Below are positions 6,359 to 9,500 of a stretch of DNA of 64,000 nt, in pieces. The position numbers were made by a program, and so were the translations under genes. The stretch lies in assembly GCA_002269645.1 (NCBI GenBank), contig NIVC01000741.1, forward strand, positions 1-64,000. Direction: 5' to 3'. Source of the stretch: Macrostomum lignano (taxonomy: Eukaryota). How positions within the stretch are numbered: the first letter of the stretch is position 1; each line of letters opens with the position of its first letter. Below the pieces are notes generated by a model. That model worked only from the letters and a program-made list of their open reading frames with translations, searched no databases and had not been told where the DNA came from.

Positions 6359-6536
6359 TCAGGCTCCGATGATCTTCTTCGCTATGTAGCCGGGACTGGA
6401 GTAGATGAAGAGCGCCAGTATCGCCACAATGAGACTGACAATCAGCAGCTTCAGGAGCACCCATTTGAACCTGTGCCACATCAGCGCCAGCGCCTTCAAC
6501 GGGTTCAGCATGTTCATGAAGGTGGACTCGGGTCGG
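6359..6536 (-). CDS. OTOF: Otoferlin alternative terminal exon B (distal TM tail)
   Basis: Acceptor ctttcag|C, same phase as exon A. Encodes [58 protein letters not shown]. Confidence 0.9.
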
Positions 6537-9500
6537 CTGAAAGTAATCGCATTTTTCATTTAGTATCGACTGCATTCGTGAAGGTGTAATTGGCTAACTA
6601 ACGACAGCAAACTGAAGCTTCACGAGGTAAAACTACTGCCGCAGAAGTTCTGAAGTTCTGCCGCAGCCCTCGGAGCTGTCACGGCCAGGTGGACTGGCAA
6701 ACTTGAAAAACATGCTGGTAGCGAATGGGATCCATGTAATAGTCACTAGAAATTGAATGCTTTCACAACGTAAAGCTTCTGGATGGGAAATATTGTTGTT
6801 TTTCTTGTGCGACCGCTGAGTTCAGAATGAGGAGGAGGTCACAATACAGGACAACATCGAGATTCAAGCAACAACGAGAATGAATGAGTAAATGTGTAAC
6901 ACGGAACAACAGAGTCCGAGTACGGCACCCTGCTCGGGGTGCACAGACTGACTTCAGACGTTGATCATCTTCTTGGCCAGATAGCCGGGGCTGCTGTACA
7001 CAAACAGCACCAGCAGGGCCGCCAGCAGGGCCACTGCCAGCAGTTTGAGCAGCAGGGTGCGGTACTTCACGCAAACAAGAAACCTCACAACTTTGAGCGG
7101 ATTCAGGATCCGCAGGAAGGAGGTCTCTGGGCGGCTGCGAACGATAAGCAGTGGCGATGCGAGCTGTTGAATTAATGTTATAATAATTGCTTCGTGCACT
7201 TTGTGGTGTTACTTCAGCAGTTGCTTTTGGTCTGCTGGCTTTCAATTACTGGCTTGGACGGCACTGCGACTGGTGCAAATTCCGAATGACTGATGAGTCA
7301 CGTGCTCTGTAGATTAGCTTTCTGGATAAATATCTTTGTTTTAATTTATAAATTTTTAGTTTCAAAGTGTACCTGAGTCACATAGAGACACAAATGCAAA
7401 AAATATCTTTCTAGATTCAGAAGACTATTTGAGCTCGTGTATCGAGAGCTTGACGATTTTTACTTGAAATCTTTTACAATCAAATTTCGCTTAATGTTTC
7501 TGTTGCAAAGTTACTTTTGCACCACCACCTACTCAAAGCGACTCTGGGACACTTTTGATAGGGTGATACTATCTCTTGATAGGGTGACAGAGAATCAGAC
7601 AGACGGACTCACTTTGGCGGTGGCATCGGCTGCGGCTCTTCCCGACCGAGGCCGGCCGGGTTGGCCTCCGCCTCTGCCGCGGTCAGCAGCTGCAGCTCTA
7701 CGTCGACCTTGCCCTGAATGCAAAGTGTAGAAATGGTGAATGAATTTTCGCATACAATGAAAAGTTAACCATCCGGGGGGGGACAGAGCGTCTGATGCGT
7801 GATCTCACGTGACCACCACCCCTGGTTCGATTCCGTACGCGGCCACATCGTGCTAGTGTGCACGCAAACATTTATCAGCGAATTGTCATGCGATTCCTGT
7901 GGGACGGGCTGTGGGAGAGCTGGCTGTGGGACGAGATGTCGCCAAAGGCGTTGAGCCACGGTGCCCGCAGCCCTCCAAAACCCACTTGTCCACAGAATGC
8001 ATGCGACAGCCCTGTCTCACCGCAAGCTCTCTCTCGTTGCTGTCCTCGTCTGCCTCGCCAAGGAACGGCCACCAGCCTCGGCAGCGCTTGTTGTGGAACA
8101 GCGAGAACGTCTTCACGCCGCTGTCCTTGTCCAGCAGGAAGGTGCCGCAGGCCTTCGCCAACTTGGCGCCGCGCGGCATCTTCGACAGCGACAGCTCCAA
8201 ACCGCCGAGGAAATCGTCCGAGGACACGATGTCCGCGTCCCACACCTGCAGGTTGAGCCGGCACATGGCTTTCTTCTCCTCCTCGTCGATGGCGAACAGG
8301 CTGTCCTTGACACGGTAGACGATCTTGTCTTCGGCCTTCAGGTAGTCGAATTTGAAGATGAAGCGCCAGTTGAAGTTGCCCTCGCCGTTGAGAGACCTGC
8401 AAGAGAAATCCAAATTTACTCAATCTCTCGTTTTGCAGATACGAAAGATGAACGTATTTATCTAGGTATGCGATTGACTGTAGCAAAAATGGCTCAACCG
8501 ATTTTCACCATTAGATCAGAATTTTTTTACAGAGAATTGTACACACATGTAAATGTATGTCTGGGAGGTCTAGAGCGGGCTCAAGACGTCAGTTAAATGA
8601 CGTGCTTCTTGATTTTCGCTAGTATAGTTAACCTAATTTGGCCCTTTGTCTCACCTGTAGTGGACATCCGTTACTTGGTCATCGATTCCGAGGCCTTTCA
8701 TCCAGCCTTTGACGAATATGTCGGAGCTGGCCTCGCCCGTCAGGCCGCCCGTGTCGTTCAGCGGCACCTCCTCGGTGTCCCAGATGATGACGCGGAGCTC
8801 GTAGCTGACGGGCTGTCGTGGAGTGATGTCCACAGCGGCTGGCGGGGTGCCCAGCTCCTTGGGAAACAGGTCCACCCACATCTCGATGCGGCCCTGCTCA
8901 ATGCCCGGCTTCTCCGGGGTGAACAGCGGCCGGGTTTCGATGTGCTCGGGGACCAGCGGTACTCCAGTGATGGACTCCCAGCTGCACAGCGCCTTCAGGG
9001 CAAGTGGCTCGTTCGACTTTATGATGCGGCCTTTGTAAAGTTTCGAAGAGGAGCTTAAGACAAATGGATTAAAATAATTAGCTCATAATACGTTTATGAT
9101 GGGGCCTCTAGCTACTCCTCCTCTATGACTCAGTATCGATTTCTCTGTTATTACGCTCGTATCGAGTTCTAGTAGTCATTGACAACAAGATAGTCCATTG
9201 CCTTCCCTTGACTAATGTCTGAAATTTGTTTGGCCTCGCGTTGTAGCGGTCTCCGAGTGACAATGCGCCCAACTCTCCCTTGACTAATGTCTGAAATTCG
9301 TTTGGCCTCGCGTTGTAGCGGTCTCCGAGTGACAATGCGCCCAACTCTCCCTTGACTAATGTCTGAAATTTGTTTGGCCTCGGTCTCCGAGTGACAATGC
9401 GCCCAACTCTCCACACAAAGTAGCGGGGTGGAAGCTGGAAAGCCGCACTGAACCAAGCTTGTATAGAATAGGCCAAGGGCTTGTGCGACCACCGCCAATG

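Follow-up and report, generated by a model that had tools for sequence, protein, structure and literature searches.

Does an invertebrate otoferlin choose between two alternative membrane anchors, and if so, do they correspond to the brain-type and cochlear-type tails encoded by exons 47 and 48 of mammalian OTOF? The question is raised by a ferlin gene in the first 64,000 nucleotides of contig NIVC01000741.1 (assembly GCA_002269645.1), the whole of which is termed the window below. Recognisable exons of the gene lie on the minus strand between ~29.6 kb and 6.4 kb, and at its 3' end one shared coding exon is followed by two tandem, paralogous tail exons, termed A (proximal) and B (distal). On balance, we favour the interpretation that these two in-phase exons give rise to two otoferlin isoforms and that the pair originated by recurrent tandem duplication, being analogous but probably not orthologous to OTOF exons 47/48.

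Direct reading of the sequence reproduced to the base the gene end described in the initial annotation, in which an exon (7713-7613) terminating in AA precedes two exons that both begin cag/C, complete an Asn codon and run to a stop. The acceptors of exons A and B fill the identical split codon AA/C in the same phase, such that the window contains tandem paralogous exons, each encoding a whole tail with its own stop, behind one common donor. The tail of exon A displays a Cys-Val juxtamembrane motif (FLVCVKYRT) and a Leu/Ala-rich transmembrane domain (TMD), while the tail of exon B displays a Trp-His motif (MWHRFKW) and an Ile/Val-rich TMD; the variable core, Trp-His vs Cys-(Val/Thr), is located ~9 residues ahead of the hydrophobic stretch. 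In both tails this stretch is single, comprises 18-20 residues with a mean Kyte-Doolittle value of 2.6-2.7 and is followed by ~12 residues. Both thus fit the definition of tail-anchored membrane proteins, which have one TMD within ~30 residues of the C-terminus, and the N-terminus of the window ferlin begins directly with the C2A domain, lacking an N-terminal signal sequence. Otoferlin is a tail-anchored protein inserted via the TRC40/WRB pathway, and its TMD is important for endoplasmic reticulum targeting in hair cells. When 11 ferlin tails from other animals were compared by tblastn with the whole 64-kb window, 11/11 matched exactly exons A and B, and no third tail exon was found.

Upstream of the shared exon, exon 8396-8021 has the acceptor tcttgcag/G, which fills the split Arg codon of the preceding exon (...CACTACAG/gtgaga at 8654), and the donor GCG/GTGAGA. 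The shared exon is 88% identical by tblastn to the corresponding exon of M. lignano, and the junction ...CCAAA/GTRAG that follows it is present in M. lignano and in the brachiopod Lingula as well. Two hexamers resembling poly(A) signals, AGTAAA and ATTAAA, sit 46 and 59 nucleotides past the stop of B and likely mark the gene's 3' end, while no canonical poly(A) signal was found in the 417 nucleotides that separate the stop of A from the acceptor of B.

The assignment to the otoferlin branch was examined with a 1627-residue concatenate of the exons, which is approximate. Pfam matched C2 in five stretches of it (E 9.5e-66), FerI (E 9.7e-8), FerB (6.8e-19), dsrm_Ferlin (3.1e-18) and Ferlin_C (1.1e-25), and gave no match to the DysF domain in this incomplete concatenate. 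The precomputed Pfam annotation of a full-length M. lignano orthologue (P0210) comprises C2, FerI, FerB, dsrm_Ferlin and Ferlin_C only. Lek et al. 2010 defined two ferlin subgroups, DysF and non-DysF, with invertebrates generally possessing one member of each and the invertebrate non-DysF ferlin being co-orthologous to OTOF, FER1L4 and FER1L6. A search of a large protein collection revealed that the closest homolog of the concatenate is P0210 (2303 bits, by a wide margin), followed by a protein of the monogenean Cichlidogyrus casuarinus (P0211; 1674 bits); proteins of molluscs, Lingula and vertebrates that bear the name otoferlin or otoferlin-like match at ~1450-1540 bits. In the C-terminal third the concatenate is 70% identical to P0210 and 55% identical to P0211, while its middle and N-terminal parts are 56% and 62% identical to P0210, respectively. 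By its domain architecture and its top matches to flatworm ferlins and named otoferlins, the window gene is identified as a type II (non-DysF, otoferlin-like) ferlin of a macrostomid flatworm, in line with the otoferlin-type gene first proposed here.

Exons A and B are diverged from each other. They share 32/60 aligned residues and 109/177 nucleotides (62%), the same codon is used at only 14 of the 32 conserved residues, and no similarity was found between their 200-nucleotide flanks. The duplication is therefore considered to be old, as both synonymous sites and flanks have diverged, and the same divergence rules out recent gene conversion between the two copies. Nevertheless, both retain all positions of the ferlin tail alignment that are invariant or nearly so. 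Since open frames, in-phase CAG acceptors, hydrophobic TMDs and invariant residues persist despite this age, A and B appear to be old, intact paralogues that are both maintained by purifying selection, which upholds the initial view of two diverged tails under constraint. Use of both junctions (7613>7134 and 7613>6536) is very plausible, given the age and conservation of the two exons and the annotated dual tails of Lingula, Ptychodera and scallops.

Table 1. Features at the 3' end of the window ferlin gene
Feature	Position	Strand	Basis or detail
Exon, second half of last C2 domain (...NERELA)	8021..8396	-	Within Pfam C2/Ferlin_C match; in region 70% identical to P0210
Common penultimate coding exon, 101 nt	7613..7713	-	Acceptor ...gcattcag/GGC; terminal AA is the split Asn codon
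5' splice donor GTGAGTC, predicted to serve both alternative junctions	7606..7612	-	Direct sequence reading
Tail exon A, proximal, Cys-type: juxtamembrane part, anchor and short luminal end	6954..7134	-	Acceptor ...tcgttcgcag/C; stop TGA 6956-6954
Donor-like A/GTCAGT, one base past stop of A; candidate for cassette use	6947..6953	-	Pattern reading only
Tail exon B, distal, Trp-His type: anchor and luminal end	6359..6536	-	Acceptor ...attactttcag/C; stop TGA 6361-6359
Poly(A)-signal-like AGTAAA (6313-6308) and ATTAAA (6300-6295)	6295..6313	-	Pattern match only

Flatworm relatives provide information on the age of the pair. The M. lignano locus L009 comprises a shared exon (34267-34365) and one tail exon (35390-35569) of the Trp-type (...PLKALKFLIWDPYKW...), with no second tail exon in the ~1 kb intron or in 10 kb downstream; the single-tail M. 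lignano proteins are P0210 and P0330, and two further cluster members carry the same tail as P0210. The Cichlidogyrus locus L010 comprises a shared exon (18892-18990) and one tail exon (19025-19204) of the Cys-type (NRPETSFLSMMNPLKVIKYLICTKFKSLLIKLL...), with no second tail exon within the intron and the downstream flank examined. As only the Trp-type is found at the former locus and only the Cys-type at the latter, each type suffices as the sole anchor in some flatworm. Neighbour-joining (NJ) analysis of 36 tails unites A with the tail of Cichlidogyrus at 91% bootstrap, a value that is 77% when the five-residue juxtamembrane motif is masked and 90% when only the C/W column is masked, while A and B are sisters in 3% of replicates. 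A four-point test within flatworms favours the pairing of A with Cichlidogyrus and of B with M. lignano, the signal originating from columns 15-30, and B and the M. lignano tail have PLKAL and the Trp in common. These results indicate that the Cichlidogyrus tail is the orthologue of A, that the A/B split predates the macrostomorph-neodermatan divergence and that one tail exon has been lost in each of the M. lignano and Cichlidogyrus lineages.

Outside flatworms, dual tails are present in some animals and absent in others. RefSeq isoforms, which for these species are transcript-based gene models, display the alternative tails ...KYMICVRFKW... and ...RYILWRNYRW... in Ptychodera flava, ...RYILCHNYKW... 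and ...RYILWNNYKW... in the scallops Mizuhopecten yessoensis and Argopecten irradians, and ...KYLVCVQFKW... and ...RYILCNTYKW... in Lingula anatina. The genomic locus of Lingula (L011) comprises a shared exon (14793-14891) ending in the junction ...CCAAA/GTAAGT, as in the window, followed by a Cys-Val exon (15416-15595; AG/C, Asn) and a second exon (17156-17335; AG/A, Lys) in the same order as in the window. The two scallop copies are 48/60 identical yet differ in C vs W, and W to C is a single-base change. In Mya, Biomphalaria, Haliotis, Mytilus and horseshoe crabs the listed isoforms all end in one and the same Trp-type tail, and no second tail exon was found in Araneus, Owenia, Bradybaena, Capitella and Paramuricea within the flanks examined. 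A two-tail arrangement general to invertebrates is thus ruled out by the single-exon loci of these five genera, M. lignano and Cichlidogyrus. A third C-terminus is annotated in Ptychodera flava (P0393, otoferlin-like isoform X5; NRPDTSFIICLNPLRALWFFPMPLQVDTMQ...); it has no clear TMD and could be a decayed tail exon or a model artefact. In Paramuricea clavata (L005:2730-3683) an additional intron, located after ...FFYSMP, interrupts the cnidarian tail exon.

Further tandem tails are present in a metagenome contig and in gene models. A compact, AT-rich ferlin gene on a Tara Oceans metagenome contig (ENA ERZ908199; L007:5150-6210) has an extra intron after ...YLICVR (cg/gtttgt), followed by two tandem, in-phase, stop-terminated exons that encode only the transmembrane part, (R)FKPMIIKLIIVLLIGLLFGLFLYSAPGLIMQKILGV and (R)FKWFLIKAISIFLVLLIFALFIYSAPGLIMQRLLGG. 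This pair, whose exon boundary differs, is an independent duplication. The top matches of an exhaustive HMMER search with tail A were gene models reading through tandem tails. In Branchiostoma belcheri, two adjacent read-through models on one 4.02-Mb contig (P0432/P0433; KAI8499153.1, KAI8499151.1) contain at least five tail-like segments, all of them Trp-type variants, and alternative tail exons may form an array in amphioxus. Models from the teleosts Thunnus orientalis (P0130), Synaphobranchus kaupii (P0480) and Scortum barcoo (P0434) include an extra tail copy: what is fused to the Cys-type otoferlin tail is either another copy of the Cys-type or a further, divergent tail (RPNTSMSWILNPVRVVCILAWRSYKFHC...), which hints that in fish the known pair is followed downstream by a third tail exon. 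Tandem duplication of the ferlin tail exon therefore appears to be recurrent across Metazoa, as judged from these gene models and loci. The HMMER search also recovered a cnidarian-like metagenomic family (P0444/P0519/P0520) with two tandem copies of the part before the ...FFYSMP intron. A ferlin C-terminal fragment filed as a Bacillus thuringiensis hypothetical protein (P0171) lies on a 254-bp contig and is almost certainly animal contamination.

Certain observations tell against the favoured interpretation of two used exons of recurrent origin. No near-identical protein or contig was found for the window gene in any search, the best tail identity being 54-58%; the acceptor of exon B has a weaker pyrimidine tract (10/20 upstream positions, compared with 14/20 for exon A and 13-15/20 for the other exons of the gene); and the single tail exon of the M. 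lignano locus, the closest match, demonstrates that even within macrostomids the pair has not been kept throughout. The Ptychodera-Lingula quartet remains type-wise even with the motif masked, although marginally (2.35 vs 2.46 and 2.48), and the motif Cys-Val-(R/K/Q)-(F/Y), common to hemichordates, Lingula, plankton, flatworms and vertebrates, could reflect common descent. The first three points, along with the lack of a canonical poly(A) signal downstream of A, would fit an improbable alternative in which only one of the exons is functional and the other is a never-spliced relic with a fortuitously open frame. However, a neutral relic of 60 codons and such age would not retain its frame, in-phase CAG, hydrophobic TMD and invariant residues; the well-supported orthologue of A is the working tail of Cichlidogyrus, and B has the ancestral Trp-His state found in most animals. 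It is less probable by far that the tandem arrangement, the only observation in its favour, reflects a collapsed haplotype, an assembly duplication or the last exon of a truncated ferlin paralogue. The 62% DNA identity and unrelated flanks exclude a haplotype or assembly duplicate, the same tandem layout occurs in Lingula, and the origin of B from a separate truncated paralogue, which the initial annotation named as a way in which its proposal could fail, was rejected since only 417 bp separate the stop of A from the acceptor of B and no other ferlin-like segment is present there or downstream.

The Ptychodera-Lingula quartet and the shared Cys-Val motif bear on ancestry, where the initial annotation had proposed either a very ancient bilaterian switch or a convergent duplication. 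Under a single origin, which we consider rather unlikely, one ancient bilaterian Cys/Trp exon pair would have given rise to A/B, to the pairs of Lingula and Ptychodera and to exons 48/47 of vertebrates, all orthologous by type. Lineage-wise likeness outside the motif would then be produced by concerted evolution or by co-evolution with the remainder of the protein, and species with a single tail would have lost one exon. The tests applied were quartets, region masking and NJ bootstrap on ~60 sites, and their resolution is low. In pairwise comparison A is best matched only by Cys-type tails and B only by Trp-type tails, in each case with scores above that of A against B, and the NJ topology joins vertebrate, hemichordate, Lingula-proximal and plankton Cys tails; moreover, the window and Lingula share exon order, and differential retention among flatworms shows that loss happens. 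The resemblance of types proposed initially (LVCVKY to LICTRY; MWHRFKW to LWHTYRW) is real but limited to ~5 juxtamembrane columns (20-24), in which grouping by type wins 16/18 inter-phylum quartets. Over the whole tail, grouping by species wins 16-17/21 quartets, including 6/6 with the window, and outside the motif it wins 17-18/18, type vs crossed pairing being at chance there. The tree of tails suggested at that stage is likewise mostly lineage-wise outside the motif: the cross-phylum Cys clade has a bootstrap of 7%, which is 0% with the five motif columns masked and 3% on inclusion of A and Cichlidogyrus, and masking of the motif unites the Cys and Trp tails of vertebrates in 53% of replicates. 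A single origin must also accommodate the reversed exon order of mammals relative to the window and Lingula, the recent scallop duplication that still gave a C/W difference by a single-base change, the lack of any sign of recent A-B gene conversion and the many independent losses it requires. Type-wise orthology of A and B to vertebrate exons 48 and 47 is thus supported only in columns 20-24, and the reversed order and the low bootstrap over 60 sites make it less probable. Taken together, these comparisons favour recurrent duplication with a convergent juxtamembrane motif over one ancient origin; the pair is ancient within flatworms, while shared ancestry with the mammalian pair is unsupported. 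A bolder proposal, which we regard as unlikely, is that the Cys/Trp anchor choice is ancestral to bilaterians or older, was kept for >0.5 billion years and lost many times, its orthology being masked by lineage-specific exon co-evolution, and that the interfacial Cys is a conserved regulatory site, e.g. for S-acylation, sorting otoferlin to a distinct membrane or cell type. If true, the brain/cochlea TMD switch of mammals would gain a deep, testable functional meaning.

According to the favoured interpretation of two isoforms from a recurrently duplicated exon, the gene would be the flatworm's single otoferlin-type ferlin, and the donor after the shared exon would join either of the two paralogous exons, each of which would supply a whole C-terminal module consisting of a juxtamembrane helix, a single transmembrane anchor, ~12 luminal residues and a stop. 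The resulting tail-anchored isoforms would have identical C2-domain bodies and different anchors. Exon A, which carries a stop, could act as a cassette exon that is bypassed in favour of B, like mammalian exon 47, or as an alternative terminal exon; were it a cassette spliced through the donor-like site just past its stop, B would then act as 3' untranslated region. On the evolutionary side, the ferlin tail exon would duplicate in tandem in many animal lineages, with one copy repeatedly gaining Cys in place of the interfacial Trp. Two anchors on the same Ca2+-sensing body would most plausibly alter insertion efficiency, membrane or organelle targeting, or retention, and as a pair the two exons would be functional analogues of OTOF exon 47, which encodes the brain TMD2, and exon 48, which encodes the cochlear TMD1. 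As suggested in the initial annotation, the isoforms might possibly be sensory and neuronal. Lipid modification of the juxtamembrane Cys could, speculatively, contribute; no relevant literature on otoferlin palmitoylation or S-acylation was found.

The exon 47/48 switch of mammals is already well known and alternative tails are already present in the RefSeq models of a few invertebrates, while no papers on alternative ferlin tail exons outside vertebrates, on their recurrence or on the Cys/Trp pattern were found in the open-access literature. The role of the two mammalian otoferlin anchors is still unclear, and mutations in exon 48 cause deafness. The repeated pattern bears on this question: it suggests that selection has repeatedly arrived at two anchors, which would then be no peculiarity of mammals, and the recurring Cys-vs-Trp switch points to ~5 residues as the functional core of the difference. 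Macrostomum, which is amenable to transgenesis and for which single-cell atlases exist, is a tractable model in this respect.

Other features of the window were recorded in passing. The ferlin introns are densely filled with long micro- and minisatellites (14307-15158, 20818-22069, 24862-25316, 27322-28626, 17149-17858 and 26402-26862), comprising (ACAG)213, (CTAA)314, (TCAA)115, a 15-mer x87, a 16-mer x44 and a 32-mer x14.5, which create long spurious open reading frames (ORFs), e.g. SVCLSVCL.... The intron upstream of the shared exon contains at 7780-7850 (minus) a stretch resembling a transfer RNA (tRNA) T-arm (ggaatcgaacc...), possibly a remnant of a short interspersed nuclear element; as a tRNA candidate it was rejected, ARAGORN finding no tRNA in 6000-9000. 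A 17-bp G-rich repeat (GGGGTGGTGGGGTCTGC x23) occupies 5491-5885, ~0.5 kb downstream from where the ferlin gene ends, and its minus strand reads as a putatively coding Pro/Thr-rich ORF (...PADPTTPQTPPP...). An intronless-looking ankyrin-repeat ORF of 363 residues (3846-4937, plus; Pfam Ank_2, E 4.9e-11) with an Ala-rich C-terminus follows closely downstream, on the strand opposite to that of the ferlin gene. The neighbouring gene at 31930-36606 (minus) encodes an NSUN2-type RNA cytosine methyltransferase (Pfam PUA_NSUN2, Pre-PUA_NSUN2, Methyltr_RsmB-F). Two minus-strand ORFs, at 40249-40719 (Pfam RNase_T, E 4e-5) and 44542-45348 (similar motifs, no Pfam match, an (AQEAPAA)n repeat), seem to be paralogues in tandem that encode a DEDD/RNase_T-type (TREX-like) exonuclease.

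The closest known system is mammalian OTOF, in which the brain TMD2, featuring a Leu block, is encoded by exon 47 and the cochlear TMD1 by exon 48 (PMC10394277, PMC7768390). The brain and cochlear tails given in the initial annotation matched database sequences, the cochlear tail ...KYLICTRYKWLIIK... in P0135, P0141 and P0169 and the brain tail in P0181 and P0186, and both types are present in database sequences from rays to mammals. As in the window, exons 47 and 48 are tandem paralogous exons after one shared exon, each encoding a whole tail with its own stop, and the junction splits a codon in the same way (exon fragments from Logan and NCBI read S-RPDT, i.e. AG/C). In both systems the tails differ at one juxtamembrane position, which is Trp-His in one of them and Cys in the other, and the stop lies at the very end of the proximal exon, compatible with cassette-type skipping; mammalian exon 47 ends in its stop and is skipped to reach exon 48. 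In contrast, and as noted from the outset, the genomic order is reversed, the Cys-type being distal in mammals and proximal in the window, where the Trp-type is distal. The Leu block belongs to the Trp-type tail in mammals, while the Leu/Ala-rich TMD belongs to the Cys-type tail in the window; TMD composition thus does not track tail type.

Lingula, Ptychodera, Mizuhopecten and Argopecten resemble the window in producing two different complete tails from one gene. Lingula is similar also in genomic order and junction phase, its proximal YLVCVQFKW resembling FLVCVKYRT of the window, although Cys is present in both of its tails, and the scallop pairs, at 48/60 identical residues, are recent in comparison with the window pair at 32/60. 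Tandem exon duplication that yields alternative versions of one protein module is familiar from Dscam and from the Drosophila Cav2 gene cacophony. The unit duplicated in the window differs from these in being the terminal, stop-containing exon, and since inclusion of A terminates translation, the mutual exclusivity of the two tails would need no special mechanism.

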